Origin: Geosiphon pyriformis uo1
Taxonomy: Eukaryota; Fungi; Glomeromycota
DNA length: 64,000 nt
Reading direction: 5' to 3'
Assembly: GCA_016748015.1 (NCBI GenBank)
Contig: JAAOMT010000572.1
Location: 335,905-399,904, forward strand
A model generated the notes under the pieces. It did no database searches, was not told the DNA's origin, and saw only the letters and a list, made by a program, of their open reading frames with translations. Both the position numbers and the translations under genes were made by a program. The first letter of the stretch is position 1, and each line of letters begins with the position of its first letter. This document shows positions 25,658 to 63,581 of this stretch, in pieces.

Positions 25658-26316
25658 TTAGTTTAAAAGTATATCAAGTGACATTCTTTCACGAATACGA
25701 TGAAATGCCTGCCGTTTTTCACTATGCCAAAAGTTTCTGATCATCAGTGGTGTACGACCTTGGGATGGTAAGCATTTCGCAATTTTGGCCCATTTATGGC
25801 CAATCGTCCCACATTTCTCGATTATGATTGATTTTTCTAGTTCGCTTAATGGCTCTTGGTTAACTTGGATAAGAAATAAAAATTGGAAAGATTAGGTCAT
25901 ATTAAATTTTAAGGCAAGATTTATAGCCCATCAAGAAAAACTAACTGGAAAGATCCAAATGATGAACCCAGCTAAAGATTTGAAGAAACTGAAATTTGTA
26001 AGAATAATAAATAGTATAAAAAAAAAACAAAAAACTCATGAATTCAAAATGTCTGAGATAAAATTTTTTGCCTTTACCGTTCTCTAATTTGTTTGTGAGT
26101 TCTTGTTCCATTCATTTCCTTTGAAATTAATCTCCAACGGCGCTTATGAACTGAAAAAAGTCGTCTAAGTTCTTGGTCTTCCTGGAAAAAATTAGAATGA
26201 TTAAGAGAGAATTCGAAGAAATTAAAAAAAAAAATTTCAAAGATTTTGTAAGAATAGAAACCAACTCTGCCTGTCCAAGGCCCAGTATTTTTTTTTGTTG
26301 CTTTTATTGGTGACAT
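25658..26316 (-). CDS. Small R2R3-type Myb transcription factor, cluster copy 1 (4 exons)
   Basis: Exons 26316-26266, 26181-26078, 25971-25946, 25863-25658. Product MSPIKATKKNTGPWTGR|EDQELRRLF..RWRLISKEMNGTRTHKQIRE|RWVHHLDLS|INQEPLSELEKSII..GHKWAKIAKCLPSQGRTPLMIRNFWHS..RMSLDILLN*. Confidence 0.9.
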
Positions 26317-28682: not shown

Positions 28683-29545
28683 TAAAAAAATATTTTACTT
28701 TCTATCTAATAAATATTAATTTTTAAAGGGGTTTCTTATTCAACTTTTTCAAAAGGCTTTTTGCGGGAATTTACGGTAATGATTTACTTAATTTTTGATT
28801 CGAAAATTTCATTTGTACAGATATTATCATGCCACAAATTTGTCATGTGCTGAAAAAGTAGAAATTCTGTATTTTTTTTTTTATTTCAATTTATAATTAT
28901 GATCTGATAGCTTATAAGGAATAAAAAAATTTATTGAAATTTTTCTTTAATTTAGTCAATAAACTTTGTTATAGTTTTTTCTTTATAATTCGATAAAAAA
29001 AAAATTTATGACGAAATTTTTTTTTGAAAAATAAAAAAAGAATCTTCCATTGTAGAATTTTTAATATTCTCGTTTAACTTTTTATATCTTGAAAATTTAT
29101 AAACCTGATTTAAACTTTAAATTTACATTTATTTTTTCTTTTTTTGGATGGATTTATAAAGAGGCTAAAAAAAAAGTGTGATAGTCTTTTTAATATTTAA
29201 GATAACAGTACCAAATTAAAATAATAATTTTGACTTGGACGCTTATGGTCTTAAATTTAATATGATCAACAAAAAAGTTTTTCAATTACGTATACAGTAT
29301 ATATAGAAAAGTCAGGATTATTTCGGGGCTTATTTAAATTAATTCCCCGTTTAGGCATAATAACCGTAATTGAAGATTCTGAAACAAAAAATTAATACAT
29401 ATTTGGTTATTTGTGTATAAAAAATTTAATATTTCTTTTTGGTTCAAAAGTTGAGTGAATCAGAAAAGCAATTCGAATACACTTTCTCTTTTTTGAGAAA
29501 CTAAAAAAGTGCTTGCTTGTTTAAATTATATTTGTTATCCATAAG

Positions 29546-29576
<31 letters not shown>

Positions 29577-29686
29577 ATATATATATATCTCTGTTCCATT
29601 TTCAGACTATGATCAAATTGTTTTATTTTTTAAAATTTCTGTTTGTTTGCAAATAAAATTAATACCAAAATGAATATCAAAAATGG

Positions 29687-29687
<1 letters not shown>

Positions 29688-29740
<53 letters not shown>
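29688..29740. repeat. poly(T) tract (~53 nt)
   Basis: Read directly. Confidence 0.95.
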
Positions 29741-29742
<2 letters not shown>

Positions 29743-29749
29743 GTTCATT

Positions 29750-32700: not shown

Positions 32701-33200
32701 AAAATTTTATTTAGTTTTTTAAAACTATTTTTTTACTTGACATATCTTATTTTGAATTTCTTTTTATTATTATCAATAACTAAAAAATGACCAATTTAGC
32801 TTATGTATATATTTTACAAATACATCAAAATTTATTAGGTTTAGAGCCTACAAACATTTTATTTAAAATGTTTAAAAAGAGTGTAGACCTTTCACAATCT
32901 ATTAACATAGTAAGTGTTCATGTCTAATTAAACGTGAATCACGTATTTTTCTTAAATGTCACTAGTCACTAAAACATTTTTTAAATTCGATATTTTATTC
33001 TAGATACTTATCATTATTGGTAAAAGAAAATAAACTAAATTTTTCATGTTAAAATATTAATTTGAAGATAAGGCCAAAGTTAAACTTGAATAGCCTTTTG
33101 TAGACAACTAGGAATATATATTAAAAAAAAATTGCATTATTTTAAGTATAATAAAAGTTACATCTAAAGTATGGTTTATTTTACGTTGAATATAAAAAAA
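29750..33200. other. Extremely AT-rich gene-free block, probably old decayed repeats
   Basis: No ORF of 60 aa or more, very few CpG, and the same texture as the decayed LINE interior. Boundaries approximate. Confidence 0.5.
30683..30716. repeat. Perfect 16-bp inverted repeat with 2-nt loop
   Basis: ATTAAAGTATCACAAT-TT-ATTGTGATACTTTAAT, with imperfect arm extension on both sides. Confidence 0.85.
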
Positions 33201-36328: not shown

Positions 36329-36955
36329 TTATTCACGTCTATTCAAAATGTAATCGATAGACATCCGATTGATCGGATTTTTGACCTTGCCTTTGACCCT
36401 CTGATGAGTCCAAAAACAATTTTTAATAGTTAGCTCCGAACGTCCCGGGAATAATTTAGCAATTTCTTTCCATCGTCGATTGTACTTTGAAGCATAAAAA
36501 AGAACTTTGGTTTTTTCATCATCGGTTAACGATTGGTTAGCGTCAACTAATTTAAAAAATATAAAATAGGATTAAGTTATGAGGCAATAAACTGATGTCC
36601 ATTCAAAGTCTCACAATTAGAACTTTTAATGGATACTCACGACCAGGTTGGAGATGATTGATCCATCTATATGGACATTAATAAATATTACTTTTTATTG
36701 AAACAATGAAATTTTTAATTTTAAAAAATTTTTATTTGCCTGTCCCGAATCTGACGATAATGGCGTGAATTATTCATCTCTTCTTGAATTTTTGCATAAT
36801 TCTGGCCACGTTTTTTGATCAATTCGATTAAACCTCTGTCTTCCTGATGAACAGAGAAAGATTAATTTTAATAAATTTGACAAAAGAAGTGATGAAATAT
36901 ATAATCAAATGTTCACTTCTGGAGACCAAGACCCTTTGTTTGTACTCTTAGACAT
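36329..36955 (-). CDS. Small R2R3-type Myb transcription factor, cluster copy 2 (4 exons, GC-AG intron 2)
   Basis: Exons 36955-36917, 36843-36740, 36666-36641, 36546-36329. Product MSKSTNKGSWSPE|EDRGLIELIKKRGQNYAKIQEEMNNSRHYRQIRD|RWINHLQPG|LDANQSLTDDEKTKVLFYASKYNRRWKEIAKLFPGRSELTIKNCFWT..RMSIDYILNRRE*. Entirely missed by the ORF track. Confidence 0.88.
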
Positions 36956-39979: not shown

Positions 39980-40725
39980 ATGAAAAATTTTTTAACGTGT
40001 GATCAAGACTCTACTCAAAAACCAGAATACATTGTTGGTCCTTGGAGTGAAGAAGTAATTTCTTTCATTTTAAGATTTGCTTCCTTTTATTAATATCTGT
40101 CAAAAGATTAAAAAAATTGAAATTCAATTTGTTTTTTTAAGGAGGATAAAAGACTGCAGCAGTTATTTTCCATTTATGACCGTCAATGGCACTTGATCTC
40201 TATGGGTCTCAAGGAAACGCGAAGTTATAAACAAATTCGTGAACGGTAAAGTTTCTTGTAAATTCAAATTTTGATATTCATTTCACCTGACCCTAATGCG
40301 TTTTTTTTCTCTCTTTGTTTATCTAATTAATAGATGGGTTAACCATTTAGATCCCAATTGTAAGTTTAGAATCAAGTTTTTGTTGTTGTTGTTGTTGTTG
40401 TTTTTTGTAAGATTCTTAAATTTTTTTATTTTCCTACTATTCGATAAAAGTGAACAAAAACCCATTAAGTGATGAAGAAAAAGCAACTATATTACGAATG
40501 TACGATGCTTTTGGAGCAAAATGGGCATTCATAGCGAAAGCCTTGCCATCACGTGGCCGTACTCCTTTAATGATCCGAAACTTTTGGTATAGCGAACAAC
40601 GGACAGAATCAACACGTATTCAAGCAAAAATGTCAATTGATTCTCTTCTCAACAACGATTGTCAATCGGGCAAAGAACTAGTATTTCGAAATAAAAGACG
40701 ACGAATTAATTCAATGTCACGATGA
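39980..40725 (+). CDS. Small R2R3-type Myb transcription factor, cluster copy 3 (4 exons)
   Basis: Exons 39980-40054, 40142-40245, 40334-40359, 40451-40725. Product ..VGPWSEE|EDKRLQQLFSIYDRQWHLISMGLKETRSYKQIRE|RWVNHLDPN|LNKNPLSDEEKATIL..GAKWAFIAKALPSRGRTPLMIRNFWYS..KMSIDSLLN..NKRRR (NLS-like). Confidence 0.92.
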
Positions 40726-43060: not shown

Positions 43061-43780
43061 ATGAGTTCCAAAGCACCTTCTTCCTTTACTGTACAACCGT
43101 CGTTACCAGAGGATTCTTTCCCGTCCCTTTCATTTTCCCCTCCTCGAAAAAGAAAGTATATACAATGGACTAATGATGTAAAAAAAATTAAAATTTTTCA
43201 AGAAAACTTGAAATTTCTCTCTTATATTTTATTTTATTATTTTATTTTATTTATCAGGAAGATCAAGCTCTCAAAACTCTGGTCCCAATGTATCCCAAAG
43301 AATATGCTAATATAGCAAAAAACTTTTTTCCTGGAAGGAGTGGTAAACAAATAAGGGATAGGTATTTTATGAAAATTTGTGTGTTTCTTTTGCTAAAAAA
43401 AAAATTTTAATGAAACTAGTTTGATTTACATTATATAAAGATGGACCTCCATTTCTGACCCAAAAAGTAAGCCATTATAAATAAGATTTTTAATTTTGTT
43501 TATGATTTATTTTATTAACCTTTTTTATGCAATCGAATATTTTGCTATCATTATTTTTTTCAATTTATCTTTTATAGTTGATAATTCCCCTCTCAAACCT
43601 GAAGAAAAATTCCGGATCCTTGAACTTTACAAGACACATGGATCCAAATGGACCACAATTTCTGAAGAATTGCCTGGGCGCTCTCCTTCAAAAGTGAAAG
43701 AATTTTACTATGGACATGCTCGAAAAAATCAAAAGAAGAAGCGGGATTCAAAAATGTCAGTAGAGTTCATTTTAAATTAA
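43061..43780 (+). CDS. Small R2R3-type Myb transcription factor, cluster copy 4 (4 exons)
   Basis: Exons 43061-43177, 43258-43361, 43441-43466, 43578-43780. Product ..PRKRKYIQWTND|EDQALKTLVPMYPKEYANIAKNFFPGRSGKQIRD|RWTSISDPK|IDNSPLKPEEKFRILELYKTHGSKWTTISEELPGRSPSKVKEFYYG..KMSVEFILN*. TATATAA at 43007-43013. Confidence 0.92.
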
Positions 43781-45249
43781 GGTTTGCTTGGTTCTTGAAA
43801 TTGTCATAACCTCCCCTTCCTACCCACAAATAATATAAATAAGTAATTTATTTCAATTGAGATTTAAATTTTATGATTTTTGAAAAAAAGTGTCACAAGT
43901 ACCAAACCTAAAGTAAACTAAATTAAGATCTATGTTTAAAATCCAAAAGATTTCCAATAAAAATGTACATATGCTTTAAGAATTATTTTGTAAACTGAAA
44001 AATACTGAATAAAAATAATAAAAAACTTTCACAAAATTTATAACTGTTTCTATTAAAATTCATTAAACAATAAAAATTTCTTAATAAATTTATATTAACA
44101 ATAAATAATATTTTGAGAACCAAATTCACATAATATATTTTTAACTTTTGAAATGGAATTTTTTGATGCGAAAATTTTTATACAAATTTCGAAAATTTTG
44201 GGAAAAAATAAGATTCTAAAACAGCATGGTGAAAATCTTGCTGAAATTTTTCGGCTATAAAGCGGTATTATGAACCTAAATTTAACTCTTCAACTCCCGA
44301 ATCAGTTGCTATTACCAGTTAAAAACCTAACACACACAATTACTACCATAAATGACAACCAATATCGCGATTGCAATTGCGAATCTTTTGATTGCAGGTA
44401 TTTTTACCAAATCAGAGCTCAGACTTTTCATGATTGAATTTCTTGTCATGGATATTTAACTTTCATTTAGTGTTGTCCCTTTGGTCCGAAATAATTTAAA
44501 AAGTTCAGTTCCTGAGATTCTTTTACGAGATTTGAACTCAACGCTCTCAATTCTAATAATCCACCAATTTTAATTTTTTTAAGAAGGAAAAAAACCCACC
44601 CTATACTAATGATCGAACTACAAAATTTATTTTTCAAAATTTATTCTTTGATAAAAATATAAAATTTATCATAACGAACTGAAAAAAAAAAGATATTGGA
44701 GTTTTTTATTGCATTAACAAAGTTTATTGATAAAAATCTATCAAATATATTTCAGTTTCTTTCTTTTAGTTTTTTCGTAATTATTGATTTTTATTTGTGA
44801 ACACTATTCAAGAAATATCAAATACATTGTATTATTTTAAAAAAATTTCTGATTTATTTTGTTTTCTTGTCAAATTTTTTATCTTAATTAAAATAACTTG
44901 ATTATTATCAAAGTTTGAAAAAAAAAAGTTTTTTCGAAACAATTTGTAATTTTTAACACTATGTTTATTAAAGTTAATCTTTTTAATAATACTTAAAAAT
45001 CAAATATTTAATACTTTTTATTTTTAAATAAAATAAAAATTGATTAATATTAATAATAATTAAATTATTATAAAGTTTGTAAATCCATTTAAAAATTTAA
45101 ATAATTTAAATAAAAAATAATAACATTAAAATAATAATTATTAATATTAAAAATTTTTTAAAAATAATAATTATTATTAACAACAATTTTAATTATTTGT
45201 AATTTTTATTTAAAATTTTAATTAAAAATGAAATTGTACTATAACAAAT

Positions 45250-48200
45250 AAACATTAAAAAATATTGTATTGACATAATTTGAAATTGCAACCATATAAT
45301 AAATAACCATCATATTGGTGACAACTTATTAGAATGCCGTTTTTAATTTCACTCTAAAAAAATGCATTATAGCACTTTAAAATATCAAAATTCTAAGTAT
45401 TATAATTTGAAAATATATAAGTTATGTTATTCGAATTTTGTACTTAATCTATATAAAATAATAATTTGATTACATAAAATTGTTGGTTCTTAAATTTTTT
45501 GTATTATAAATGTTTTTATGAAAATTTTTTAATTTCTAATAGCAATATAAACTTTAAATAAATTTAATAAAAGTTTTTTTAAAAATATTACTTATTTCTT
45601 GTTTATATTATTTTAGAATATCTAATATATTTTATTAAATAAAAAAACAACTTTTTTTAATATTCAACTTGGTTTTTTGATAAGAATTTATTTAAATAAA
45701 ATTAATTTTAACATTAAATACTAAAAAATTATTGCTATAAATAGAGAAAAATTACAAGGATTTTCGTTTATTTTAAACTATTCTAAAACACTCTTAGTAA
45801 TCTTACTAATTCAGTTAAAAAGTAATTTAAACCTTGCTTTTAAATATAAAAAAAAAACTAACTGGATCTGTTTCTAGTTTTTTAAGTAAATTAACACTAA
45901 TCGTAGATTAAATTTTTTATTTAATTCTCATTTTTTTATTTGAATTCTTAGCTATCTTGCCAATCTATTTTATTATTTACTATATTCTTAAAAGCAATTA
46001 ATTTTGCTTAAATTGTTAAAATACTTTAAGTTGTTTAACGAAAAAATATTTAGCTAAAAAAGGCTTTTATATATTTACAATATGCTTAAGTTATCTTATC
46101 TCAAATTATTACTTTCAAATTTAAAACTAGTCTATCTAAAAAGTTTAAAAATATTTATTCTAAATTTAAACCAAATTTAACTTATTAAATATTTTACTTT
46201 TTTTATTACCCAAACAATGCCAATTAAGTTGGAATTTTTAGTATACTGCTTAAAAAAATAGCTTTTATTTGGTTTGTATTATTAATTAAAAAAGATTTTC
46301 TTATTTTAAGACTTAAAAAATTTTTAAAATCTAAACCAATATTTAGAAATATAAATAAAACTTGAATTATGACAGTTTATATGTATTATTAACTGAAAAA
46401 AAAGCTTAATTTAATTAATTTTGTTTTGATTTGTATAATAATATTTAAAATTTATTGTTAATCTTAATTGATGTTAATATACTTAATAAGCTATTAAAAA
46501 TGTAGTTTGTTGTAACAATTAACTTTAATAATATCATAAAAAATAGTGTTTTTAAGTTATATTAGTAATTCCGTTTTTGTTTAATCTTTTAAGCTCAATT
46601 AGTTATTAGCTTTATTTTAGAATAACTTAATACATATTAATGCAATTTGTTATAAGTCTTTTACAAAAGTAGAAAAGTTTTGTTATTAAAGTATTAAATT
46701 TTGTTTCTATTGTAAAAAACCTAGCTATATTGTTTGTTAATATTTTGTAAAAATAACCGAGTATTAACAAAAATTAATATTTTTAATATTATTAATTACT
46801 TATATTATTTTATTATTCTTAATCGCAATTATATATTTTATTAATATATTTGTAATTAATAATAATTGCTAATTTAGTTGAGACTTTAATTATTTTACAA
46901 ATAAGTTCTAGCTCATTTAAGTCTTATATTTTATAAAACATTAATATGAAAAAAAGAGTTAAAGTTTTCTAATAACTGCAAGTTGTCAATATATTTGACA
47001 AAATATAAGCTAATTTATTTCTGAAACATTGTTTATATAATTGGTTTATAACTCGGTAAAAAAAATATATTTTTGTTTAGACCAATCTATAATTTTTTTG
47101 AAAATATCTAAAAAAAATTAAAAAAAATCTATTGGTATTCCAAATTTTCAGCAAATGTTTTAATACTCTTTGTTAAGAAAAAAATAATTCTTCAAGTTTT
47201 GTGTTGATTACCAAAGTTGTAATCAAATTACAATTAAAGATTTAATTATGTCTTTTGAATTTATAAATGTCTACTATTTTTCAATATTTGATAAATAATA
47301 TTTTTAAAGATTACTTAGATTAATTTGTTGCGCAATATTTTAATAATATTTTTATCTATTTAAAAAATCAAAAAAACATAAAGAGCATATATATTTGGTT
47401 TTAAAACAGTTATAACAATATAAGTTGTATACTAAACTTAAAAAATATGAATTTAATTAATCTCAAATTGAATTTATTAAATGTATTATTTCTTTTAAAA
47501 GCATCTTAATAAATTACAAGAAGATTTAGACAATTTTGAATTGAATAAAATTTTGTTTTGTAAAGTATATTTAAAACTTCCCGGAATTTACTAATTTTAT
47601 TGGTAATTCATTAAGAATTATTTAAATGTGACTGCATTATTATCACTTTAACAAGAAAAAAAACTGTTTATATGAACTTCTTAAACTGATAATATATTTA
47701 GGGTTTTAAAATAACTTTTTATTTTTGTTCTTATATTAATTTATGCTAAGTTTGCTAATTTTATATTGTTAAACCTAATGTTATAGATTTTATTGTTGAA
47801 GTTATTTTTAACAGCCAAGATTAAATAACTGGTTATATCTTATGGCTTTTTATTTATATAAAATTTTCATCCAAAAAATCAATTATAAGATTTATAATAA
47901 AAAGATTTTAGTAATTATTGTGATTATAAAAATCTTTAGTATTTTATAACAATATAAATACTAAACTGGCATTAAGCTCAATAATTAATTTTTTACGAAT
48001 CTGATTTATTGCAAATCGAAGCAAATGTTTTTTATGTTATTTAAAAGCGAACTTAAAAATAATAAAATTTATAGTTAATCTAAAATTAATTTGTTTAAAA
48101 CTAATTATTTTGGAATTGCAACTTTTTTTATATGTATAAATGCAAAGCTTTTTAAAACGATTATTGATGCTTATACTTAAGAAATTATTAATAATCTTTT

Positions 48201-49700
48201 AAATTTCAATTTTTAACTATAAAATATAGGAATATTAATAAAATTCTATTTTATAATAACCAAATTTATGTTTAGAAAATTCAGGATTTTTACAAGTCTT
48301 AAAAAAGACATATTAATTTACTTATGAAACATTTTGAAATTGGTAAAACTTTTGAATTGGTTGCTAAAATATTTTGGTAACTATAACAAGAAATGTTTTT
48401 TAAAAATTATGTAAAATTATATAATATTTGTTTTTGTTCAAAGTTTTTTGTTATTAGTCTTTTAATCTATTAAAACTTTTAACTATTCTAAACATTCTTA
48501 GAAATTAATTTTTATAGACTTTATAATAATTTTACTAATAATAATAATAAAAATTCAGCCTCTGTAATAATAAATTACTTAATCGAATTCAAAAACTATA
48601 ATATAAGAAGAAATAATTCAATTGATTTTTTAAAATTGTTATCAAACAGTTTTTTAAACAAAGTTATCAGATTATAGTTTTTAATTTGTATTTTAATTTT
48701 GAAAATATGTTTTTATTTTTAGTATTCTATTCTTAATCAATAGTCAGATTGAACATTTTAATTCAATTTTAGAGCAGTATTTGCAATATTTTATGAATTA
48801 TCAGCAATATAACTGGATTAATCTATTACTATTGGCAAAATTTATATACAATAATATTATTTATTAATAATTATAGGTAGAATTTTGAATTTAATATTGT
48901 TATAATTAAAAAGTCAGTAAATTCTATTGCTAAAAAATATGTTGTTAAATTTAAGAAAATTCCAAAAAAATTGACTTTTAAACTTAAAAATATATTAATA
49001 AATACAAAAAAAACAGATAAATAGCATCAAAAAACACTTATACTTAGAATAAGTAACAAAATTTAGCTTTTAAAATGCAACATTAAAACATTTCAGCTTT
49101 ATAACAAGCTAAATTATAAAAAGCTTGGACTGTTCAAAAAAATTTTTAGATTAATTTTGTAATTTATGAGTTAAAACTGCTAATATATTTTAGAATCTAT
49201 AATGTTTTTCATGTTTTTTACTTTTTTTAATCGGATAAAAAAACCAGATAATATTGGGTTTGAAATTAATAAAATTTTCAATTTTAAGATTGTTGGAAAA
49301 TAAATAAGATATTTAGTTTCTTAGAAGAAATATATTATTTTAAAAGTTACTTGGAAATTTACAAAACATATAATGAATACATTTTAATTAATCCAAGTAT
49401 TTTATGTTTAATATCCAAATAAACTTATTTCAATTAAAGAATATTGTTCAAAAAAAAGATAATGTTATAAATAAAGAACAAATACAAGAATTCTGGATTA
49501 TTTTGGATTATTCTTAGTTAGCTTACTAATTTAATTAATAAGCAATCTGAGATTTGTTTTTGAATATAAAGAAAAGCAAACAGATCAATTCTTAATTTCT
49601 TAAGTAAATTAATATCAATTATGAATTAAATATTTTGTTTAATTTTTATTTTGATATTTAACTTTTCAGTTATTTTGCTAATCTTTATAATCATAACAAT
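45250..49700 (-). mobile_element. Heavily decayed repeat/element of uncertain class
   Basis: A 4.5-kb CpG-poor block with no ORF of 60 aa or more, but protein-like stop-riddled minus-strand translations (e.g. KTCKNPEFSKHKFGYYKIEFI near 48240-48300). Class, strand and boundaries uncertain. Confidence 0.4.
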
Positions 49701-50449
49701 TATTAATTAATTAATTAATTAATTAAAAATAAAAATTCAGAAATACAGTTTTTAAAATTTATTATAACCAATAAAAAACAAAGCAATAAAAATTTAAAAA
49801 TATATTGAATTTGATTTTTATTTAATAAATAAATTAAAAAAAAATTGATTTATTATTTTTAATAAAGTAATTAAATGAATTGTTAACTTAATTATTAATT
49901 TGGTTGTTAATTTTTTTAAATATAAATATAAATAATTGTGATTTGAAATTAATTTTCTTAAGACTGATTTTTTTAGTATATTATAAACAGTACTTTTTTA
50001 GACAAATCTGTACAAATCAATTTTTTAAAATAATAAATAAATTTATAAGTTTTGTCTCTTAATTTGTATATTCCTTACAAAATTCAACATTTTTTATTTT
50101 TTAGTGATTTTTTATAATTCCAAAATATGTAATATTTTAAACCAGTAAATTTTTAATATATTAATGGTTTAAAATGCTCTTTTAAGATTTAGAAATACAT
50201 TTTTAAAATCCTTCTTTTTAGAAGCGGAATTGCAAGAGCAAACTTGAACTAAAATAATTTTAGTCAGTTGTCAATAAATAATTTCGCAAGTCGAATTTGA
50301 AAATTTTGAAATTTTGAAATTATTTATATATAAGAAGCAAATTGGAAATATTTCAATTATCTGGTTAAAATATGAATATAAATCTTAACATAATATATAT
50401 TTCTTAATCATAAAGTTAGATAAAGTGTAAAGAAATCAATTGTGAAAAA

Positions 50450-51778
50450 CTAGTTGAAATCAATTAACGGGTCAAATTCCACAACCAATTTGTTTGTTTT
50501 CCACTGTTCGAGATCTGCGATAAGGGATTCCCATTCTTTTTCATTCCTTACTGATAAGACTACATTCTCTGGACCACGACACAAGAGATATTCGGTATTG
50601 AATTGAAAACGATTTTTAATCACAGAGAGAAACTCGGAAAGAGTGGAAGATTTTTCATAAAAAAATTGATGCTTCCCCGTGGGAAACTTCAACGATACAA
50701 AGATCTATTAGATAGTAATTGACGAATTTATTCATTTTAAATGAGTTGATATTTTGTATAAAGCCAAATATTCAGAAATTAGAACTTACCTGATCGATTT
50801 CGAAATTTCCACATTCCAATTCCTTTACTACTGATGCAGTTTGTACTGCTGTCTTTTCAGATTCTAAAAATTTAGGCTTAACCTTCTCGATATAATTCAA
50901 TTTTCCCTTCCCTTTATCGTGAATTTCATTGGGTATTACAGGCCTCCAATTGGTTAAAGTTTTCGAATCTGAGTGAGATTTTTGGTGGTGTTGGGGTGGA
51001 TTTTTGAATGATTTTGGATTGACCTTTTTTTTTTAATAAAATTTTCAACATGAGAAGGCAGTTTTTTTCAAGATCCAAATTATTTTTAAAGATTTCAAAG
51101 AATAATCGTTCCAACCTTTAGCAACTTTGGTCTTAAGGATTCAAAAATACACCTTAATTCCCACAATACGCTCGGATCAACGGTTTTAGTTGGAGTAAAT
51201 AATATGGAGGAAGCATTCTTTAATTTCCCATTGAGAGGGTCTAATTCAAGTGGGTAATGTTGGGTACAGCGTCCAGATGGATGTTGAAGGTACTGCTCAA
51301 AATATTTTAACAATAGAATTCGAATAAAGTACAATTTCAATCAAAGAAAAAAACTTACATGTTTATCGAAATTGGGTTTCACTTGGACGGCGAGTTCACG
51401 GAAACTGGTGACCCATATTTTCAAAATTTCACTTATAGGAATTACAAATTCTTGCAATTGGTTAATACAAATAGAGAGACATCTTTCGTTAGGCCGAAAA
51501 GAAAAAACAATCACAGAATTGGGACCAGAAGAGACCCATTTCTTGGTTGGAATGGCGTAAAAATGAGAGATTGAAAAATTAATCCAGCGGCTGGCAGCTT
51601 GGTTAGACCTATCTAATTTTAAAGCTTTCGGTGGGGTGAAATGGATAAAAAACTTATAGAAATTTAAGAAAATTCTCATAAAATTTCAAATTTCAAACCC
51701 AAATCCCATGAGCTTACCACTCAAATTCCCTTTCTCACGAGTATTAAATCTTTTGGTTTGACCATAATTTTGGGACAT
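50450..51778 (-). CDS. PH-like + C-terminal PB1-like domain protein, copy A (5' end uncertain)
   Basis: Exons 51778-51718 (open to an acceptor at 51819), 51624-51359, 51292-51116, 51023-50790, 50704-50450 join in phase. Last exon IFVSLKFPTGKHQFFYEKSSTLSEFLSVIKNRFQF..VLSVRNEKEWESLI..KLVVEF has a beta-grasp/PB1 pattern. Confidence 0.72.
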
Positions 51779-54276
51779 GAGTTCTTTGGGTTGACGGAAT
51801 TTATGTCGTATCAAAAACCCTGTTTAAAAATAGGATCTATTAAATACTATTTTATGAAGTGATATTCCAGTCAATTGGTTTTTCGGTTTCTCGCATAAAG
51901 GCTGCCAGCAAAGTTTTCTATTTGAAGCTTTCTTCACATGTGCCATCACCATGTAGGAGGCTTTTTCCCGCATGAAAACTATCTTCAAATTGCATATTTT
52001 TTTAAACCAAATTAACACATTTATCAAGCGAGGTTTGATGAAGAATGGATTGTGATGATGCTTAGAATTCCTGCTTGCATGTGTTAATTTTTAACGGTTA
52101 TTTGATTGACTTTTTGATTCACCTTTTAGAGCATTTAGTGAAATTGGTTCAAGGCTAGTTTCAATACGCCGAAGAGACCATTGCATGAGACAGCAAATGA
52201 ATTAATCAAATCTTACCTTTTAACAATATCCTAGATCTTTAAATTTAAAATACTCCAAAAAAATGATTGATCGCTATTTTTGCTTTTGCCTTTTTATAAA
52301 CAATGAAATATCCTTTCCAATAATGAGGGCTGTGGCAGGAATGCATGAGTTTAACCAGATATTTTTGTTACACAACCTTGTCACCAGTATTGAGATCTAG
52401 TTTATAATAAGTTAATAAATAAATGAACACGTGATATTTTTCCGTTTCCTTTTTTTGAAAATTTACTAAATTCTGTAGCACATTAATTTCGCTATTCATT
52501 TAAGAAATTAATCAGTTTATTTGTTCTTTCATTTAACACATATTCAAAAAATCTCTTTTAGTCATTTTCTACGTGACTTCTATCTTGATTTTTGGCTCTG
52601 TCAATAGAAATTAATACATGTATAAATTTCTGTGTTCCTCGAAATAGCGACAAGCTTAAAGCCCTGAAGTAACCTGAAAAACAAGTTCTTGTGAAACTAA
52701 TGGTTAATCTCAAAGAATATCTAGGGTAAAATTAATGACAACAATTAATTCTCGTTTCCTTTTAAGAATTTTAAATGATGAGCTCGAAGTATTTCAGGTT
52801 AGTCTAGCTAATAAATATAATCAAATATAATAATTTTGATTTCTTCAATAATAAGAGAAGTTTTAATTATCTTTAAAATAAATTTAAAAGATTTTTAAAA
52901 GAATTATATATTAATTAATTTAATCTGATTTTTAATAAAAACAAAAAGGTTCGCTTAAGTATGTTAATTTCGCTCTTTTTCTTGTATTAACATGATTCAT
53001 ATTTTAAATTTTACCTAATTTTTATCAATAAAAGCATAGGAAAATCTAAATTCTGTCTAACACATTTTAATTTTAGGAAACTATGTTCACACTTTTCAAT
53101 GCCAAAATTAAAATTCTTGCAAGAGTTTCTTTAACTTCAGAAATTATTCAATTTTTTGAAATATTCATCATCTGAATCTACATCTTAATTATTATTTTGA
53201 ACAAAATTTCATAACAAACTCGGATCTGCTAGACTCGCAAATTTTATTCTTATTTCGAAATTAGGGGGGGGGGGGGTGGGGTATGTTAAATTTATGCAAA
53301 GAATTATGAGAGATCAAAAAAAAAATTTCTATTTTATATCTAATATTTGGGAGACCTATTTTTAGGTTTTTTAATCAGCAAAAGTTATTAGAGAAAGCTA
53401 AATAAGATTTTCAATAGTTCTAAACCGAAAATTAGATAAAGTTTTTCTTGACAAGGATAAAAACGCTTTTTTGATTAAGGGCAATCATTGAAATTAATTA
53501 AGCTAAAAAATTTTGAAAAAAATATTTTTTTCACAAACAAAAATATTTTTTAAACCAACTTTCAAGTATCGAGAATTATTTTCCAACAAAGACCTCTTTT
53601 TGGGAATTTCCTGCTTTACCAATCGAGTAATTCTTTGCGGGGGTGCATGGGGCATCATCGGAGAAATACTTCAGAATTGAGGAGCAATTGGAAATCTATA
53701 AAGTGATTTACAATATTGATCATGTTTTTTTTCAGGTGAAGCGATCAAATATTTTTTCGATCCTAGGATTGAAATTTCCGCAAAGAGAAACCTTATCTTG
53801 AATGAAAGATAAACAAATTTTAGAGGGTCAACTTAGGCAAGGATTTCTCCTTATCAATAAAATGATTTGACTTCATTGGGAAATGAACGACCGGCGGAAC
53901 ATTTTGATAATTCTACCATGAAAATTTACTCTCGTCATCTTTCTGAATCAGTAATTTTCTGATGATTGAGCAGGTTTATCAAAGTTGATAAGGAATTTTT
54001 GATTCATTCATCGAATCAGCTCTTTATAATATGTGAGCGATCGGGATTGGCGAAGATGAACAATATCTTTTGGTAATTGAAAAAGATCAAGGAAACTAGT
54101 AATTCAATATATCTTTCTCACGAAATTTAAGGCTTAATTTCCAAAAAAAAAATTGATAATTGATTTTACAGAATTATTCTCAAATGAAGAAAATATTTGA
54201 AGATTACAGATTATATACAATAAACAAAACTGTTTGGTCATAAGGCTGGGAAAAGGTTGATTCATGCTCGACGCCA

Positions 54277-54956
54277 TCATGATTTGTAATTCTTTGTGAG
54301 TAGGAAATCTAAGGACATTTTTTCGCGGATGCGATAAGAAGCTTGCCGTTTTCTGCTGTACCAATAATTTCGTATCATTAAAGGCGTTCGGCCTTTCACA
54401 GGTAAGGAATTTGCAATCAAGGCCCACTTGTGGCCAATAGTACGGCATTTTTCAGCAATGATAAATTTCTCCGTATTGCTTAATGGCGAACGATTTACTG
54501 AATTTCCAAAAAAGTTAATCATTCATTCAGATGATCTAGTGTCATAACTCTAAATTAAGTTGACAATGATGCTCATTTTGAACTTACTATTGGTATCTAA
54601 ATGATGAACCCATCTGTCAAAAATATAGGTTCAAAAGTAAAGGAAAGTATTTGTGAGGAATTTTTTTCGATTTTAAAATAGCTGCTTTACAAAATTTTTT
54701 TTACCTATCACGAATTTGTTTATGAGTACGAGAACCATTCATTTCACGTGATATGATATGCCATCTTCCGTTGTACATTGAGAAAAGACGACGAAGCTCT
54801 TGGTCTTCCTGAAATTAGAGAGAAAAATATTTCATTAAAAAAAAAGGTTGAGGTTTTGACTGAAGCTCATAAATGAAACTTTAGAAAATTTCTCATATTA
54901 AATACCTGCGTGGTCCAAGAACCAGTGTTATTTTTTACCTCTGGCCGTTTTTTCAT
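54277..54956 (-). CDS. Small R2R3-type Myb transcription factor, cluster copy 5 (4 exons; alternative in-frame ATG at 55052)
   Basis: Exons 54956-54906, 54808-54705, 54613-54588, 54497-54277. Product MKKRPEVKNNTGSWTTQ|EDQELRRLFSMYNGRWHIISREMNGSRTHKQIRD|RWVHHLDTN|INRSPLSNTEKFII..GHKWALIANSLPVKGRTPLMIRNYWYS..KMSLDFLLTKNYKS*. Confidence 0.92.
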
Positions 54957-57900
54957 TTCTTTTATATGAGATTTGGGTTTGGTGATTTTGGTGGTTTTGG
55001 TTTGAGGCAGATAAAATTTGCCACGAAATATTTTATTTTTTGAAGGGTGCATAAAATCTTGCTCCTTTGAACGGAGAGTTTATAAAGGATTTTTGCGGGA
55101 AAAGCTTTCCGAGAAGCTCTAGAATATACATTGTGAATGAATAATAATGTTCAAATTTTCAACATTAAAAATCAAATGTTCAAGCTTCTCGAAAGCCAAA
55201 TATTTGCTCATTTTCTTTCATCCGGATAAATTGATTCTCCACCCTTTAAGACTTTACAACAATGATTTTTTTTGTTTGTAATTTTCAAATGGAAGAAATT
55301 TCTATTTATTTTGTTGTCAAATAAAATTTTTTACTAAAAAGTCATGAGGCTCTATTCAATTTTAAAAATATTCCAAATATCGATTCTTTTGATTCAATTT
55401 ACAAAAAGAAAACCCTTCCCACATTTTATCTGCTGACAGCCAACAGAACAGCTATCATTTATAAAATTGAAGATTTGAATAATTTTGATATCAAATAACT
55501 TAACAAAAGTTTTTTTTTCGTAATATTTAAGCTTCAATAGATAAGAATATAAAAAACAAACCAGTCTATTTATTAAAGTCTTTTCTATTGATAAATATGT
55601 TATTGAAAATAAACTTTTCATATCTTTTAGACATCCGAGAAACCTTTAATTGCGTTATCAAATACCGATACATAAGATTTATCTTTAAAATCTCATGGTT
55701 TTCTAAAAAAGATTAAATGTTCTAGGAACCTATCGAGGAAGCTTAAAATTTTATATAGCAATGTAAAATTGGTCTTTCAAAATTACCAGTTTCAATTCAC
55801 AACTTTATTCTATCATCCCCAAATTAATGAAAAGGCTCCCAAAACTGATTTCCAGGCTGAAAGGGTACCAAATTCAGATGAATCATTCTAAGAGACTACA
55901 TCTATTTAGGTAAACGCCTGATTAATCAATTGAATTTCCCTAATGCAGAAAATAAATGACGATCGAAAGTCTGTTTTGAAAATCAATTGCCCGATTGAAC
56001 TACGCATTCAGGGGTTCGAATCGGAGCTTTTCCTTATCATTGATTGCCAACCCATGAATATCTAAAGCGAATGAGCATGAGCCAAAAAGGCTAGAACATT
56101 GAAGCTCGAAAAAAAAGGGCATTAGTTTTTTTTATTCTATTCACAGAATTTGTAAAATTATTGAGGGATAAAATTCAAAAAAAGTACAATCGACATATTG
56201 ATTCTCAAAGATTATATAATCGATCTTTTTTTTTAAACTCTGATGAAAAACATTATATTTGCCAAATAATAGAATATGCTTTATCAATCGAATGATCATC
56301 TTTAGAATGTGAAATTATTATAGTTAATAATAGAAAATCAGAAGCTTTTTGATAAATTCACACTTAAAAGTTCCAATACTAGAAAACTGGATCATATCAA
56401 ATATGATAAAGTTTTATTAATTAAATAAAAAAAAATGGCAAAAATCCTGAACAATATTAAATAATAAATTATTTTTGTGATAAAAAGTTGATTTTCAATA
56501 AAATCATAATCAAAAGATTATAAAGAGAAATTCAATTTATTAATCAAGTGTTGCAAATAAATAAATAGATTTAACATACATAATATGTTAAGAAATTTCA
56601 GAAAAAATAAGAAATTTTTTTTATAATTATAATTGTGTAAAATATTTTTTAATTTTTCACATAATGAAAAAAAAATTCAAAAAAAAACAATAATCAAAAA
56701 TTAATAATTAATTGTCAATTTATGATGATCCTTTTTTTTTATGAAAAAATTTAATAAATATTAGTATTTAATATTTAACAAATTTTATATAATAATATTA
56801 TTAAAGTTCGAGTGAATTAGATAAAGAGCGTGTTGATCAACTTGTCATTTATTTCTTCTATCAATGGCATTAAAAAAACAAAAAAAGATTAATGAATTTA
56901 ACGTAAAAAATTTTATCAAATCGAAAAGAATATATATATATATACTTTGAATTACATTCACTACTTTCAACGATCTTTAATCCTTTTTTAAGGAAGATAC
57001 TAGATATTATATTTGTGAGATCAACTTGATTACAAATATCTGATCTCAAAAAAGTAATTTGCTTTGACAACCAATTAATTCTGACACTCATTGTCTTTGA
57101 CGCAGATTCAGACTTGTAAGAGGTAGAAGCCAATTAAGGGGAACCTAACAGGGTTAAAGGAAATTATCATTGTACATTTAAAATAAAGATCGAAGGATTG
57201 ATGAATATCAGATAATTTTTCTAAAATCCATATAAATCCAAGAATGGGAATTTATAAAAGTCGATTGGCAATTTGGAAAATGTGATATGTTATGTTTGAA
57301 GGGGTAAAATTTGAGTTGCGGGAAATAAATTAGTAACTACGCCTATTAAATGTTGATATATAAAAATGGTGTATCAAAATAAAAATATTTTGCTATAAAA
57401 AAAGCATACTTTGGTAGATCTTATATTGGGAAGTAATCATCCGAAACCTTAATTTCAAAGGCACTAAAGAAAATCAAAATTAGTAAGTTTAATTTGTTGA
57501 TTAAAATATAATAGTTGAACATACTCTTTTTTTTATTGATTTTGATTTGTTGATTTTATAATAAAGAACACATAACCACTTCTATTTACAAAAATATAAT
57601 TTGATAAGAAAATTTGAGAAAAAATATAAAGAACAATAATAAAATTTTAAATTTATAAACATAATTATCTAAATATATATTTTATAATTGTTTCTCTTTG
57701 ATTTTATCTTTTTTTGAATTTAAAAAATATCATTGTCTTTATATTTTTTCAGATTTTCACTAAAAAAAACATTATACTTTTAATTAAATTGTTTTATTGA
57801 TATTTATATTCAACATTATAAAATTAATCATAAATAAAAAATTAAAATTGTTTTTTAATATAAAATTTTGAAATAAATATATTAATTTCTTTTCAAATAT

Positions 57901-58237
57901 AATTATTAAAAATAACATACAGCCAGTATTAGTATACAGTTGTGATTTCAAATTATATAAACTTAATTAATTATGACTTCTATTGTACTTATTTTTTTAA
58001 ATGTGATTCAATATGTTTGAAATTTTAATAATAAATATTGACTTTTTTTTAATTATAAAAGCATTTATTAAAATATATAGTAATGATTGTTGCTTATTTA
58101 TTATTTTATAATATTATCAAAAAGGCTAAAAGAAAAAAAAATAATTTTTAATTTATTTTCAAACTAATTATAAATTTTGTATTTATTTTATTACTTTTGT
58201 TATAAAACCCAGAACGGAAAACCTTTCAAATTATCGA

Positions 58238-59767
58238 TTATTCCAAAAAATATGGGTTTCTTGATCTTAACCTAAAACATATATATTTAAAATACATTAC
58301 TTGATCCATCAACCAAAGCTCTAACAGTAGCTGTGGGGACGGATCAACGCTATGACTTAATAATTCTAATGCGTTATTCCAGTCTTTTTCATTACGGATG
58401 GGAAAATATTCAAAAATGTTATGGGCAAAGGGGAACTTACAAGTAAATTCTGTGATGTCCCTAATTTGGCATGAATCTTGAATTGCCAACTTAAATTCAT
58501 TCCATGACATCGAAAAAGGCACTTCAAATGTTGCTCCCTCATCATCAAAAGAGTTGGTATTTAATGAAAAGTTGAAGTGTAGATTAACCAAGAATGATTC
58601 TAGGTTTTTTGGTTCGACATTTTTGGATGATAATATATCGGTGTTCTAAATAAATGGTATTAAAAGAAATTTTTGAATTAAAGATTTCATCAAAAAAGAA
58701 TTTATGCTCAGAATTAATTATAAAGTACCTCATCCTCGGAAGAATTTTCAAAAATTGGGGCGTTGCAACGACGGCATTTGGAGGTAGCATTAGGATTTTC
58801 CTTCATATTGATCCTAATTTGTAGAATGTAACGAATATGCAGCCAAATCATTTCAAGCCTTTGCTCAGGGATATGTTCATTGGCAACAAAAGTGATCGTT
58901 GTTGCGTTTTCTATGTACAATTTTTATTAAAACTAAATCAAATCAAAAAAGATCATAAATTTTTCAAACAAAGCTCACCAATCCATTTGGTAATCTCTGC
59001 AACGATTCCCAATGTCTCAACGACAAGTATTTGGATCTAAAAAAAATTATTGCTTCAAAATGAATCGGTATAATCCTAAAACTCTTGAATGAAAACTTAC
59101 CAAATTCTTTTGTTGAGAATTCAACGTTATTGATAATGTGTCACGGCCCACCTTATTAATAAAATCTACAGCAGCAATGGGGATATACAATCTTCCCATC
59201 TTTTGATTCATTGCGACTGAAATCTTTCGCGCCATGTATCGATAATGGAAACTGGGCTGTTGACCACCATTCATATCAATGGTGAAAGTCTCTTCTCCAA
59301 ATCTGATTTCCCGAAGTTTCAATTGTATATATTCATTTCGATCAGAACGCTGCTGTGTTTGATGATGACCATCGAGGTTCGAAGTTGGAAGAACATCATC
59401 AATTCCAAACTTTCGATATTCACTTGGGTAAGATGTTGAGGTGAAGCCCCAGCTTTGGTCATTCCGCTACTTGTTTCAAGTAAACTGGTTGGTATGCATC
59501 TATCAAAAATGATAAAATAAATTGACAACTATTGGTTTACCTCATTTGCAAAAACCTTTTTATTTCTGTTATATTGAGTATAGTTTAGATGAACTGCTGT
59601 GGCATATTCTTAAGGTCAAATTTATCAACGACAAAATTCACTCGTGCAAAAACTAGACATAAAACTTTACTTTCTGTTCGCTGGGCACCAATTTTTTGAA
59701 GTGATTCCGTGGTTTCATCCAAAGATGAGATGCGAGGATCGTAGATTATCTCAGGTGACCCTGACAT
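58238..59767 (-). CDS. PH-like + CxxC + C-terminal PB1-like domain protein, copy B
   Basis: Exons 59767-59671, ~59609-59541, 59466-59101, 59036-58979, 58910-58729, 58645-58238 join in phase (first two less certain). Clear paralog of copy C: RNEYIQLKLREIRFG vs RNEYVQLRCSSLKFG; PEQRLEMIWLHIRY vs PEQRIELIWLHVAY; PIRNEKDWNNAL vs RIASEHEWISAV. Confidence 0.8.
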
Positions 59768-61319
59768 GTTGCCGGTCAAAAAAAATCCTCCAAATTGACC
59801 AGTTATTAAGGAAAGGAGAAGAATTTAATTAAAAAAAATAAATTTATCGAGCAATTGAAGATTGGTAAAATAACCCGTAAAAATTAGCTTAAATTATAAC
59901 GCGCAATAAGCCTTTGATATATTGACCTCGACTTGCAGACTATCAATCGTTACTTGAGATATTGATTTCTAACCTTTTAATCACACTAAAAAATTAAACC
60001 CTATCGAACTTGCTGATGCATCACCAAACAAATTTATTTGGTGTCAAAATTATTCTTAACACTGATAAGTCATATGATAAAACTAGGGAATTTAAAGGGT
60101 AGATGACCTCGATCCAACGTTGAATATTTCCGCAAAGTAGTATTAGAGTATAGAGTATAATTATTTTGCATTTGAATAATTAATAGCTATTATAAAGTAG
60201 ATTTATTTAATATAATATTGTTTCTATTAAATTCTTTAACACATATTATAAAATATTAACCCATTTCTTTACCGTAAATTGCTTTTAATTTCTAAAAAAA
60301 ATTTACATTCTCCGAAACTTGATTTTTTTCTTTGTCATAAATTATTAGGAAAGACCACTCCTTCGCTTGGGAGCATTATCTTGTTGAAGCCCCTTTGTCC
60401 TTATCAACTTAAAAATCTCAGTAAGTAGATTTTGCATCCATTATCCCTGTAAAAATATAAATACATATTACCTATTTTTGAAAAACCGTTAGACGAATAG
60501 GACAATTCTCCTTATATCACTGTTTCGTGGTGTTTCCAGAGAGTTGAAAATTCGTTTAAATATTGTTTCAATTGTCATTAAAGTGTTCTCGGATCGTTGG
60601 GTATTAATGGGGTGGAAATTTGTTCTTTTTTTATCCCACCAGCCGTCAATGTCTTGAAATTGTTGAATACGAGACTAGTCTACTTTTTGTGAGTTTGGTT
60701 TTCAATGTGTACAAAGAAATAGTTGTATTGTTCGTCGCGCTCTGGACGGTGATTTTCGCTGGCTAGTCCCTTTTTCTCGATCTATAATTTCAGTTTCTTC
60801 AAATTTTGTAAGGTTTGTCGTATATATTTGCAGATAGAAATCTTTGTAACATGAATTTCCTTTGCTGATTGCATGCGTGTAGTTGCAGATTAGATTTTGT
60901 CATTTCGCAGAGTTTTTAAAAAAGTCGAATAAAAAATGAAAAGAAAAAAGCCGATTAGCTCAATTTGGTATTTGCAAGACTTTAGAGACTCGTATTAAAA
61001 AACACGTTTAAGTGAAAAGAAAAATGCTAAATTAGTATATATTTATTGTAAACAATAGAAAAAGAGGGGATAGCTGTGAATACAATTTCCACATTTTTCG
61101 CTGATAAGTTGTCATAACTGTTTTTTCTGATTTTGAATCGTAGGCTAGTTTTTATAAGGTTATTTGCAAACCTTCCAAAATAAAACTTCTTCAATTGTAA
61201 ATCACGCCAATCTTTATGGCGCTAAGAATATGTCTTGTAATTAATTAAAAGAGCTTATTAAAACTAAGGCGTCTGTTGTGAAAATAACAAAGTCATTTAT
61301 TCGTCTGTTGAAAAGAAAA

Positions 61320-62654
61320 CTAACTATGTGACCATAACTCCATACATTCTTGATTGCTTATATGATCAACAGCTGATATCCATTCATGTTCACTTGCTAT
61401 TCTAAAAAACTCTTCTGTATCTTGCTCGGTCACGCCTTTATATACCATTTCTTGAATCTCAGGGATTTGTAGTGTTTCCTCAATTGCCTTCTTAATCTCA
61501 CTGTATGGTGTGAAGATGGGAAATTCAAATATTGGGATTCCATCATCAGGCGCTTTGTCGTTATCCCAATCGAAATGAAACTTGATGAGAAGTTTTTCTC
61601 CAGGTGAAGGAATCTTTTTTAGTTCGGATGCCACCTTTGAGAAGATTAGATATTTGAGAAGAAATAATTCTTAAGTTTTCGAGAAAAGTGAATGCTTTTT
61701 ACCGTGTCTCGTTTACAAATTTCAATGTTCGCCGAACAAACGAAACATTTTCTACAATCTAACTCTATAACACCCAGTTGGATATCTCTGCTAAGCATAT
61801 AAGCTACGTGCAGCCAAATCAATTCGATCCTTTGCTCCGGGGTACTTTTATTACAAATAAACGTAATATCTTGAACACTTTCTAAATGAAAGATTGTATT
61901 AGATACCAACTTTGGAGTATTTGGAATAATAATTATCTAAATACCAATTATCTGCGCAATTTGCAAGCTTCCTTCACTAGCTTCCTCATTCTCACTCGTC
62001 ACATGCATCTTAATCTATACAAAATTAGAATCGTTCTTTTGACAAACATTAATTGGATAAGCTCGAAAAAGTGGCACAAAATTAAAAACATACCAAATGC
62101 TTACGGTTCTCAAAAAGCTTCACCACTAATGAATCATTTCCTACTTTGCTCACGGCTTCCATCGCTTCAATCGGAATAGAAACGCAACCTAAATACTCAT
62201 TCATGGCGATGGTCATTCTACCATCCAAATAACGATAATGCATACTTAGATTTCTTCTGCCATGCTCTTCAGCGCCCAGGATAAAATCACCAAACTTCAA
62301 ACTTGAACATCGCAATTGAACATATTCGTTCCTATTAGGGTCATTCGAGTTGGGAAGATTAGGAGGTAAGCTTTGTCTTTTGGCTTCTTGTGGAGCTGAG
62401 CTAGAGGCGATAAATGATTTATGTTGCTCATCAAGAGAATTAAGTTGTCGAGATAACTTGGAAACAGAGTTTGATAAGGAACTAGAAATCCCGTTGTTAA
62501 GATAGGTTGGTTCAGAATCAGTCATCGTATAACTTTTATAACTGGGATCCTTAAAGTTTTTACGAAGTCTATTCTTCGCTTGAGCTGGAAGATTATAAGG
62601 AACCACGGTCATTTGCCTGGAGTGTCTCTTCGATTTTGGTGTAGGTAGGGACAT
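61320..62654 (-). CDS. PH-like + CxxC + C-terminal PB1-like domain protein, copy C (4 exons)
   Basis: Exons 62654-62094, 62014-61945, 61881-61703, 61634-61320 with GT-AG introns at the same positions and phases as copy B. Disordered basic/Ser-rich N-terminus. Confidence 0.85.
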
Positions 62655-62919
62655 TTTCTCAATCTGTCTATTTTTGAAAAAAAGGAAACTTTCCTTCGTA
62701 CAGCTTAATGTCAATCCTGATCATTCTAATAAATTTATTCCGTTAAAAAAATGCCAATTTCAGAGTTTGATTAAATTTTATCATTTTCTTTGAATCATAT
62801 TCACTAATATATCGATTGTATTTGCTGATCTAATCAATTGAAAATTAAAACATTTGCTAGTCAAATATGATTAAAAGAAATGTAGGACAAATGAAAATCT
62901 AGTTTACACCAAACCAATT

Positions 62920-63581
62920 TTAATTCAAAATGTATCCCAAACTTCCTTTGTTACCTGTACGCTCGTATTGGTTTTTAAGACGGTCAAACATATTTTGAAT
63001 TTTTCTGTTTTGATTCATGGCATAATTTTTGACTTGACGCGTTGTTCGACGTGAATTTGGATCAAAAGAAAGCTCTTTTGCGATAGAATCCCAATCAGAT
63101 GACCAACTAGGACAGCGCACTCGTGATAAAATAATCTCTTCTTCTTTAGGGGAAAGTAGGCTTTTATTTACTGATATTTTTTGAAAGAAAAAAAAAACAA
63201 ATTAGGTTCAATTCAAAATTATTAAAAAACGTAAAAATTTTTGTAAAAAGCCAAAATTTTACTCTTTGGATCGAGGTTGTAAATCCAGCTGTTTGAAAGA
63301 ATTTTCAAATAAATTTTTTTTAACTTTCAGGACTCAAAAATATGAGAAGCGTTTAGTAACTCTTACCGTTCACGACAAGAATCTGGTGTACGGTTAGGCA
63401 AATCTTCACTAATAGTTCGCCAAGGATTAGGATTTTGTTGAGAATCATAAGGTTCTATCCGCGATATCAGGAGCCTGTCCTCCTTTTTTAAAAATATTAA
63501 ACACCAATGTTAGTATCTTAAATTTAAAATTTTTGCAAAGAAATAATTTTATACCTCAGGGGTCCATTTAGAATTTGGCAT
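62920..63581 (-). CDS. Small R2R3-type Myb transcription factor, cluster copy 6 (4 exons, most divergent)
   Basis: Exons 63581-63555, 63482-63367, 63288-63263, 63170-62920. Product MPNSKWTPE|EDRLLISRIEPYDSQQNPNPWRTISEDLPNRTPDSCRE|RWIYNLDPK|INKSLLSPKEEEIILSRV..SDWDSIAKEL..RRTTRQVKNY..GSLGYILN*. Confidence 0.88.

Follow-up and report, generated by a model that had tools for sequence, protein, structure and literature searches.

Gene order at the locus

Here, we describe a 64,000-nucleotide stretch of DNA from Geosiphon pyriformis (the window), AT-rich and intron-rich eukaryotic DNA in which genes for small Myb proteins are interleaved with three genes, A, B and C, for proteins that combine a PH-like and a PB1 domain (PH-PB1 proteins). 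A first-pass annotation had proposed that the two families form a split transcription-factor system, the Mybs binding DNA and their neighbours acting as oligomerising cofactors. We built spliced gene models by coordinates and carried out full-length searches with the database proteins P0001 (B), P0003 (A) and P0019 (C). The order first reported for the minus strand, Myb6 > C > B > Myb5 > A, was confirmed both by these models, all five of which are co-oriented and have open spliced frames and GT-AG introns, and by the NCBI annotation, which calls the identical five consecutive genes (lengths in amino acids, aa):

62920..63581, minus strand: Myb6, small two-repeat (R2R3-type) Myb, 139 aa, C-terminal eh1-like motif, sister of Myb7; four exons (63581-63555, 63482-63367, 63288-63263, 63170-62920)
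61320..62654, minus strand: gene C, PH-like and PB1 domains, 374 aa (G9A89_003513, P0019); exons 62654-62094, 62014-61945, 61881-61703, 61634-61320
58238..59767, minus strand: gene B, PH-like and PB1 domains, ~360-375 aa (G9A89_003512, P0001); first and last exons uncertain, extending to 57421 in the NCBI annotation
54277..54956, minus strand: Myb5, small two-repeat Myb, 133 aa (165 aa with the ATG at 55052), C-terminal eh1-like motif
50450..51778, minus strand: gene A, PH-like and PB1 domains, 326-330 aa (G9A89_003510, P0003), belonging to another deep subfamily than B and C

The NCBI products of Myb5 and Myb6 are shorter (118 and 109 aa) than those of our models, with identical ends, and the NCBI annotation of both genes probably misses a 26-nucleotide micro-exon. 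The succession of a Myb gene and a PH-PB1 gene does occur twice, as had been pointed out, but the surrounding DNA is a cluster of Mybs, so that a gene of any kind located there would adjoin one.

Domain structure of the PH-PB1 proteins

AlphaFold models were obtained for two of the three proteins, C (pLDDT 81) and A (pLDDT 66, with a long disordered linker). Both models consist of two domains, a PH-like centre and a C-terminal PB1 domain with a beta-grasp fold, and a low-complexity N-terminal tail lies ahead of the PH-like domain. In the secondary structure of the two models, the central domain is a seven-stranded sandwich capped by a C-terminal helix, and the sequence motifs by which the first-pass annotation had recognised it are present in C and A. 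Neither a homeodomain nor any other DNA-binding domain was found in A, B or C by Pfam and in the models, as had been noted, and a simple pattern search of the three revealed no nuclear-localisation signal.

The assignment of the C-terminal domain to the PB1 fold rests on structural and profile matches. The domain of C matches the PB1 domain of NBR1 (Z 11.6, rmsd 1.8, 82 aligned residues), that of A matches the PB1 domain of MEKK3 (Z 11.7, rmsd 2.1), and a family profile matches the PB1 domains of Cdc24 at E 4e-9 and of NBR1 at 2e-5. The orthologs P0008, P0016, P0031 and P0040 pass the Pfam cut-off for PF00564 (23.6) with 34-40 bits; A, B and C stay below it, and exon-by-exon Pfam scans of the three gave nothing. 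PB1 domains dock through a lysine in the first strand and the acidic OPCA element (PMC8200828). Both faces are kept in the orthologs of Rhizophagus, Cetraspora, Gigaspora and A. colombiana and in most orthologs from Glomerales and Diversisporales. Among the window's copies, the basic lysine is kept in C only; A and B no longer have the acidic OPCA face, and that of C is irregular.

The identity of the central domain is less sharply defined. The PH-like domains of A and C score tied Z values of 9-10 to SYCP2, maize RDR2, ARAP3 and IRS-1 over about 100 residues, and no TRF2/HOY1 structure is among these fold matches. In language-model features (Atlas), the nearest cluster to the Rhizophagus ortholog is PH_RDR2 (0.92, 177 shared features), followed by TRF2/HOY1 (0.85, 158). 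None of 24 family members matches the PF24818 (TRF2/HOY1) HMM at E up to 1, and none matches that of the RDR2 PH-like domain (PF24823), the presence of either model in the library being unconfirmed. The interaction core CDDF-E of Pho2 and Hoy1 is absent; an Asp-Pro pair occurs in A and in some (Glomerales) orthologs, and in neither B nor C. The resemblance to the TRF2/HOY1 domain noted by eye in the first-pass annotation therefore holds at the level of the PH subtype (TRF2/HOY1-RDR2), with RDR2 the nearer of the two in language-model features, and stops short of demonstrated membership in PF24818.

The linker between the two domains carries a CxxC pair in B, C and the Ambispora proteins P0006 and P0035, with a third cysteine in C; as judged from sequence, a metal or redox site is possible.

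Relatives and phylogeny of the PH-PB1 family

B and C are clear paralogs, with 32% identity over 311 aa (E 9e-47) and three intron positions in common. A direct relationship of A to B and C is undetectable (blastp E about 0.8, hhalign E 0.08; 12% identity between A and C). A matches Gigasporales proteins at 93 bits, and non-circular profiles of the B/C-side subfamily match these Gigasporales relatives of A at 37-43 bits versus 9 for the best shuffled decoy. A thus joins the family of B and C through its Gigasporales relatives and the subfamily profiles. In the alignment, A, B and C also have one intron at roughly corresponding positions.

We built a profile from single exons of A, B and C and searched 1.84 billion proteins with it. 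Apart from the products of the window itself, about ten true relatives were retrieved; P0009, P0014, P0015 and P0017 were rejected as repeat-driven false positives. Besides Geosiphon, members were found in Ambispora, Cetraspora, Racocetra, Dentiscutata, Gigaspora, Acaulospora, Diversispora, Funneliformis and Rhizophagus, so that all named members come from Glomeromycotina, as far as word- and length-limited searches reach, by which wider kin may be missed. A metagenome scan found no family relatives. The tree resolves two deep subfamilies with support of 100/100 (long branches were flagged), one formed by A and Gigasporales proteins and the other by B, C, a fourth Geosiphon copy D and proteins of Ambispora, Rhizophagus and others, and a single clade of A, B and C is rejected (p-AU 9e-7). 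We found no description of the family in the literature, in line with the first-pass annotation, which had not recognised the domain combination, and the combination does look like an undescribed, Glomeromycotina-wide family.

Linkage to Mybs at other family loci

Is the pairing of PH-PB1 genes with Mybs kept elsewhere in the family? We analysed ten other family loci from six species, namely Geosiphon D, three loci of Ambispora, three of Gigaspora rosea, one of Cetraspora and those of two Rhizophagus strains, the last two not independent of each other. The first-pass annotation had named this as a test of its proposal, homologs unlinked to Mybs in related genomes counting against it. In 174 kb of flanking sequence, Pfam gene calls, a profile of the seven cluster Mybs and tblastn revealed a Myb at none of the ten loci; the best E value in the scans was 0.04, compared with 4e-7 or better for leave-one-out positive controls. 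Weak matches to the Myb profile in L004 and L001 were rejected on inspection as chance.

The PH-PB1 orthologs of Rhizophagus, Gigaspora and Cetraspora instead have a Pmp3 gene a short way upstream (L007:5024-5276, L012:9026-9307, L006:5846-6116). Conserved linkage was therefore detectable in these same flanks. One G. margarita annotation (P0028) fuses Pmp3 with the PH-PB1 gene. The fourth Geosiphon paralog, D, is flanked by ArfGAP, L12 and RhoGDI genes, and the B-like ortholog of Ambispora has other neighbours on both sides, which differ even between two Ambispora species. Upstream of an Ambispora ortholog, L001:2480-3103 contains broken frames that by eye resemble a TnpB-type transposon remnant.

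The Myb cluster

Six small Mybs with two repeats and PF00249 matches are encoded in the window; they have identical intron phases and the 26-nucleotide micro-exon. A seventh lies on an overlapping scaffold. Besides Myb5 and Myb6, these are:

25658..26316, minus strand: Myb1, nearest relative of Myb5, without PH-PB1 neighbour
36329..36955, minus strand: Myb2, with one GC-AG intron, without PH-PB1 neighbour
39980..40725, plus strand: Myb3, without PH-PB1 neighbour
43061..43780, plus strand: Myb4, convergent with gene A over a 6.7 kb AT-rich gap
L003:4143-4929, plus strand: Myb7, sister of Myb6, ~4 kb upstream of Myb6 on the overlapping scaffold

The alignment of the seven models shows a tandem pair of Myb repeats with spaced aromatic residues. 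Five of the seven have no PH-PB1 partner, and no PH-PB1 remnants were found near Myb1-4. The copies had been called DNA-binding-only; they are two-repeat Mybs, but strictly the term does not apply, since all seven end in a conserved short motif, [MGL]S[ILV]xx[IL]L, which provides them with their own candidate effector. A similar motif, of the eh1-like or IxxLL type, has been proposed to mediate Tup1 interaction in fungi (PMC4943189).

Myb5 shares 68% identity with Myb1 but 33% with Myb6, from which it is as far as from Myb2; Myb6 pairs with Myb7 (support 100/99), and a clade of Myb5 and Myb6 is rejected (p-AU 0.0017). Because Myb5 goes with Myb1, Myb6 with Myb7, and A is anciently split from B and C, there was no recent duplication of a Myb/PH-PB1 unit.

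The recognition-helix residues of the second repeat are unlike the usual plant or animal R3 pattern and vary among the seven copies, which suggests that the Mybs may have different DNA targets. No shared upstream motif linking the Mybs to A and C was found. The hexamer CGGAAA occurs within 600 bp upstream of six of the seven Mybs, Myb1-6, and of B, and not of A, C or D; its background is 16% per upstream window, a count of six for some hexamer of this kind was also reached in 7 of 300 random sets, and the paralogs are not independent.

At the Myb7 site, the NCBI annotation instead places a gene of 78 aa on the other strand. The same scaffold repeats window positions 64000-61812 at L003:8655-10843, where it ends; the repeated part is 100% identical and includes Myb6 and the beginning of C. 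This is most likely an assembly overlap, which NCBI counts as a separate partial gene. Within the window, 28000-33000 and 45000-50000 are gene-free and very AT-rich (6-24% GC), a repeat pair (45723-45966 and 49453-49684) is 244 bp long and 72% identical, and an Rfam scan of 25-64 kb gave no match. By eye, 14500-22700 contains a chromate-transporter-like gene (minus strand), a Sel1-repeat gene (19965-20783, plus strand) and a short-chain dehydrogenase (plus strand), all unrelated to the present subject.

Transcript evidence

None of the sequencing runs is recorded as RNA, but the contigs of run X2, labelled 'DNA?', are spliced, and we therefore take X2 to be an RNA run of this sample. Its contigs were compared with the stretch that spans B, C and Myb6, outside which A and Myb5 lie. 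In one contig (58729-59170), the B intron 59100-59037 is confirmed, whereas the next acceptor is 58813 in place of 58910, 97 nucleotides further on. The reading frame is thereby shifted, and the protein ends ahead of the PH helix and the PB1 domain; this form of B is a minor or decaying isoform. Another contig (62694-62542) covers the start of C unspliced. B and C are thus transcribed. No Myb6 contig was seen in X2, which proves nothing. A Myb6-C fusion transcript, conceivable on paper through an in-frame donor at 62954 and an acceptor at 62717, was set aside because the Myb6 motif past the donor is conserved in Myb7, Myb7 lacks the donor, and the C contig is unspliced; this contig stops short of 62717, so that the fusion is improbable rather than disproved.

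Discussion

Taken together, we consider it probable, though well short of certain, that the PH-PB1 proteins and the Mybs are two independent families in one duplication-prone neighbourhood, adaptors on the one hand and self-acting repressors on the other, which became interleaved by local duplication. As an adaptor, a PH-PB1 protein would hold a peptide or partner protein with its PH-like domain, and its PB1 domain would plug head-to-tail into other PB1 proteins. Orthologs from Glomerales and Diversisporales that have both PB1 faces could self-polymerise, and A, B and C are fast-evolving, partly decayed paralogs. The cluster Mybs are small R2R3 factors, locally expanded, that most likely act alone as repressors and would recruit a Tup1-type co-repressor through their C-terminal motif. 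The interleaving could have arisen, for example, from a Myb1-like copy that landed between two old PH-PB1 paralogs. Since the homologs are unlinked to Mybs at all ten other loci, the pairing in Geosiphon is probably an accident of local duplication and not a two-part regulator or dedicated Myb-cofactor system.

Several observations weigh against this interpretation. Only 265 bp separate the stop of Myb6 from the start of C, and between 25 and 64 kb of the window we found no credible gene beyond the two families. The split between A and B/C predates the parting of Archaeosporales and Diversisporales, yet only 7 kb separate them today, and in both cases a Myb of an old lineage comes first, an arrangement that an ancient unit duplication, still a possible origin, fits as well. 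No subfamily-A member was found in Ambispora. The reach of the 10 kb flanks is limited at the gene-sparse Gigasporales loci, and some Ambispora contigs are short. On the side of the proposed functions, none of the results points directly to a binding partner for the adaptors, the strict fungal motif pattern fits only three of the seven Mybs, and the study that proposed this motif calls its own motif enrichment not robust (PMC4943189).

The common orientation of the five genes and the short gap between Myb6 and C speak for the split transcription factor of the first-pass annotation. In such a system, the PH-like domain would bind the neighbouring Myb in the manner of Pho2 and Bas1, the PB1 domain would multimerise the complex on DNA, and linkage would keep cognate pairs together. 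We take the interaction region shared by Pho2, Grf10 and Hoy1 to lie within the TRF2/HOY1 PH domain. The region contacts Pho4, Swi5 and the Myb-related Bas1, and binding of Bas1 by Pho2/Grf10 in yeasts (PMC6200990, PMC11508405) lends the idea a precedent. Also in favour are the Atlas features near the TRF2/HOY1 clusters (0.85) and the Asp-Pro pair kept in A and the Glomerales orthologs at the loop that we equate with the Pho2-type core. Against it stand the missing Myb linkage at the ten other loci, the lack of the CDDF-E core and, in B and C, even of Asp-Pro, the decay of the PB1 docking residues in A and B with an irregular acidic face and the sole remaining lysine in C, and the candidate effector motif of the Mybs themselves. 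Moreover, TRF2/HOY1 Atlas clusters without a listed homeodomain family occur in Mucoromycota and plants, and the absence of a DNA-binding domain is therefore nothing special. That X2 shows B and C and no Myb6 is a weak point in the same direction. With unlinked homologs, no recent duplication of the unit and poorly kept oligomerisation residues, we regard the split factor as unlikely; the same low probability applies to a Geosiphon that keeps, or has evolved, a split Hoy1/Pho2-like regulator whose stand-alone PH-PB1 proteins bind neighbouring Mybs and set their activity in clustered pairs.

The deep split of both families between the two pairs (33% identity between Myb5 and Myb6, 12% between A and C, subfamily support 100/100) could also reflect ancient passive microsynteny. 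A Myb and PH-PB1 pair would then have been duplicated before the orders of Glomeromycotina split, its halves later duplicating alone (Myb1/3/5, Myb6/7, B/C), and the order would have survived in Geosiphon alone, because rearrangement there was slow or the genes share a chromatin domain, and without physical partnership. The clade tests reject recent unit duplication only. However, Ambispora, the closest sampled relative, has different neighbours on both sides of its ortholog, not even shared by its two species, and the equal distance of Myb5 to Myb6 and Myb2 leaves no signal for a Myb5-Myb6 pair, so that we hold this history to be rather unlikely, if somewhat less so than the split factor. Least probable in our view is that the PH-like domain was split from the N-terminus of an RNA-dependent RNA polymerase and that the family is a small-RNA silencing adaptor unrelated to the Mybs. 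PH_RDR2 is the best Atlas match, and both models have maize RDR2 among their highest-scoring PH matches (Z 9.8 and 9.6), but this domain lies within 1 Z unit of the PH/PTB domains of SYCP2, ARAP3 and IRS-1, no match exists at the sequence level, and no RNA-silencing gene is found among the neighbours.

What remains is a modest result, an apparently undescribed family of PH-like and PB1 adaptors with two ancient subfamilies, found in our searches only in fungi of the arbuscular-mycorrhizal lineage. It supplies a fold and a testable docking mechanism for proteins annotated as hypothetical or only as 'PB1 domain-containing', and adds candidate partners to the fungal PB1 network of Cdc24, Bem1 and NoxR. 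To our knowledge, Geosiphon is unique among known fungi in harbouring intracellular cyanobacteria. A Myb partnership, if true, would give such a host a clustered split transcription factor, a rarity among eukaryotes; the comparative data do not yet support it.

Comparison with known systems

The Pho2/Grf10/Hoy1/Phx1 homeodomain factors (PF24818) share with the present family a PH-like fold with similar model features, and their yeast partner is the Myb-related Bas1 (PMC6200990), whereas the PH-PB1 proteins have no homeodomain, no match to this Pfam family, no CDDF-E core and no shown Myb partner, and a PB1 domain follows. By model features, the RDR2 PH-like domain (PF24823) is nearest, and it is among the top structural matches, but here polymerase, RRM and HMM match are all lacking. 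The cluster Mybs, for their part, have the two repeats and short hydrophobic C-terminal motif of small R2R3-type repressors with eh1/Tup1-type motifs (PMC4943189), from which they differ in being locally clustered and in the non-canonical residues of their second recognition helix; binding of a co-repressor is predicted.

PB1-mediated control of transcription is known from the Aux/IAA proteins. It is also known from NLP7 (PMC8200828). In these plant systems (ARF-Aux/IAA, NLP), the DNA-binding protein itself bears the PB1 domain, whereas the cluster Mybs have none, and PB1 pairing therefore cannot join the two families. With the PB1 adaptors Cdc24, Bem1, NoxR/p67phox, NBR1/p62 and MEKK3, of which Cdc24 also combines a PH with a PB1 domain, the PH-PB1 proteins share the PB1 fold (Z 11.3-11.7, rmsd ~2 A). 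They differ from these adaptors in having no RhoGEF, SH3, TPR, ZZ or UBA domain, a PH domain of another type and, in the window's copies, decayed docking residues. The PH-PB1 family is a variant of the known PB1 adaptors rather than a demonstrated new system.

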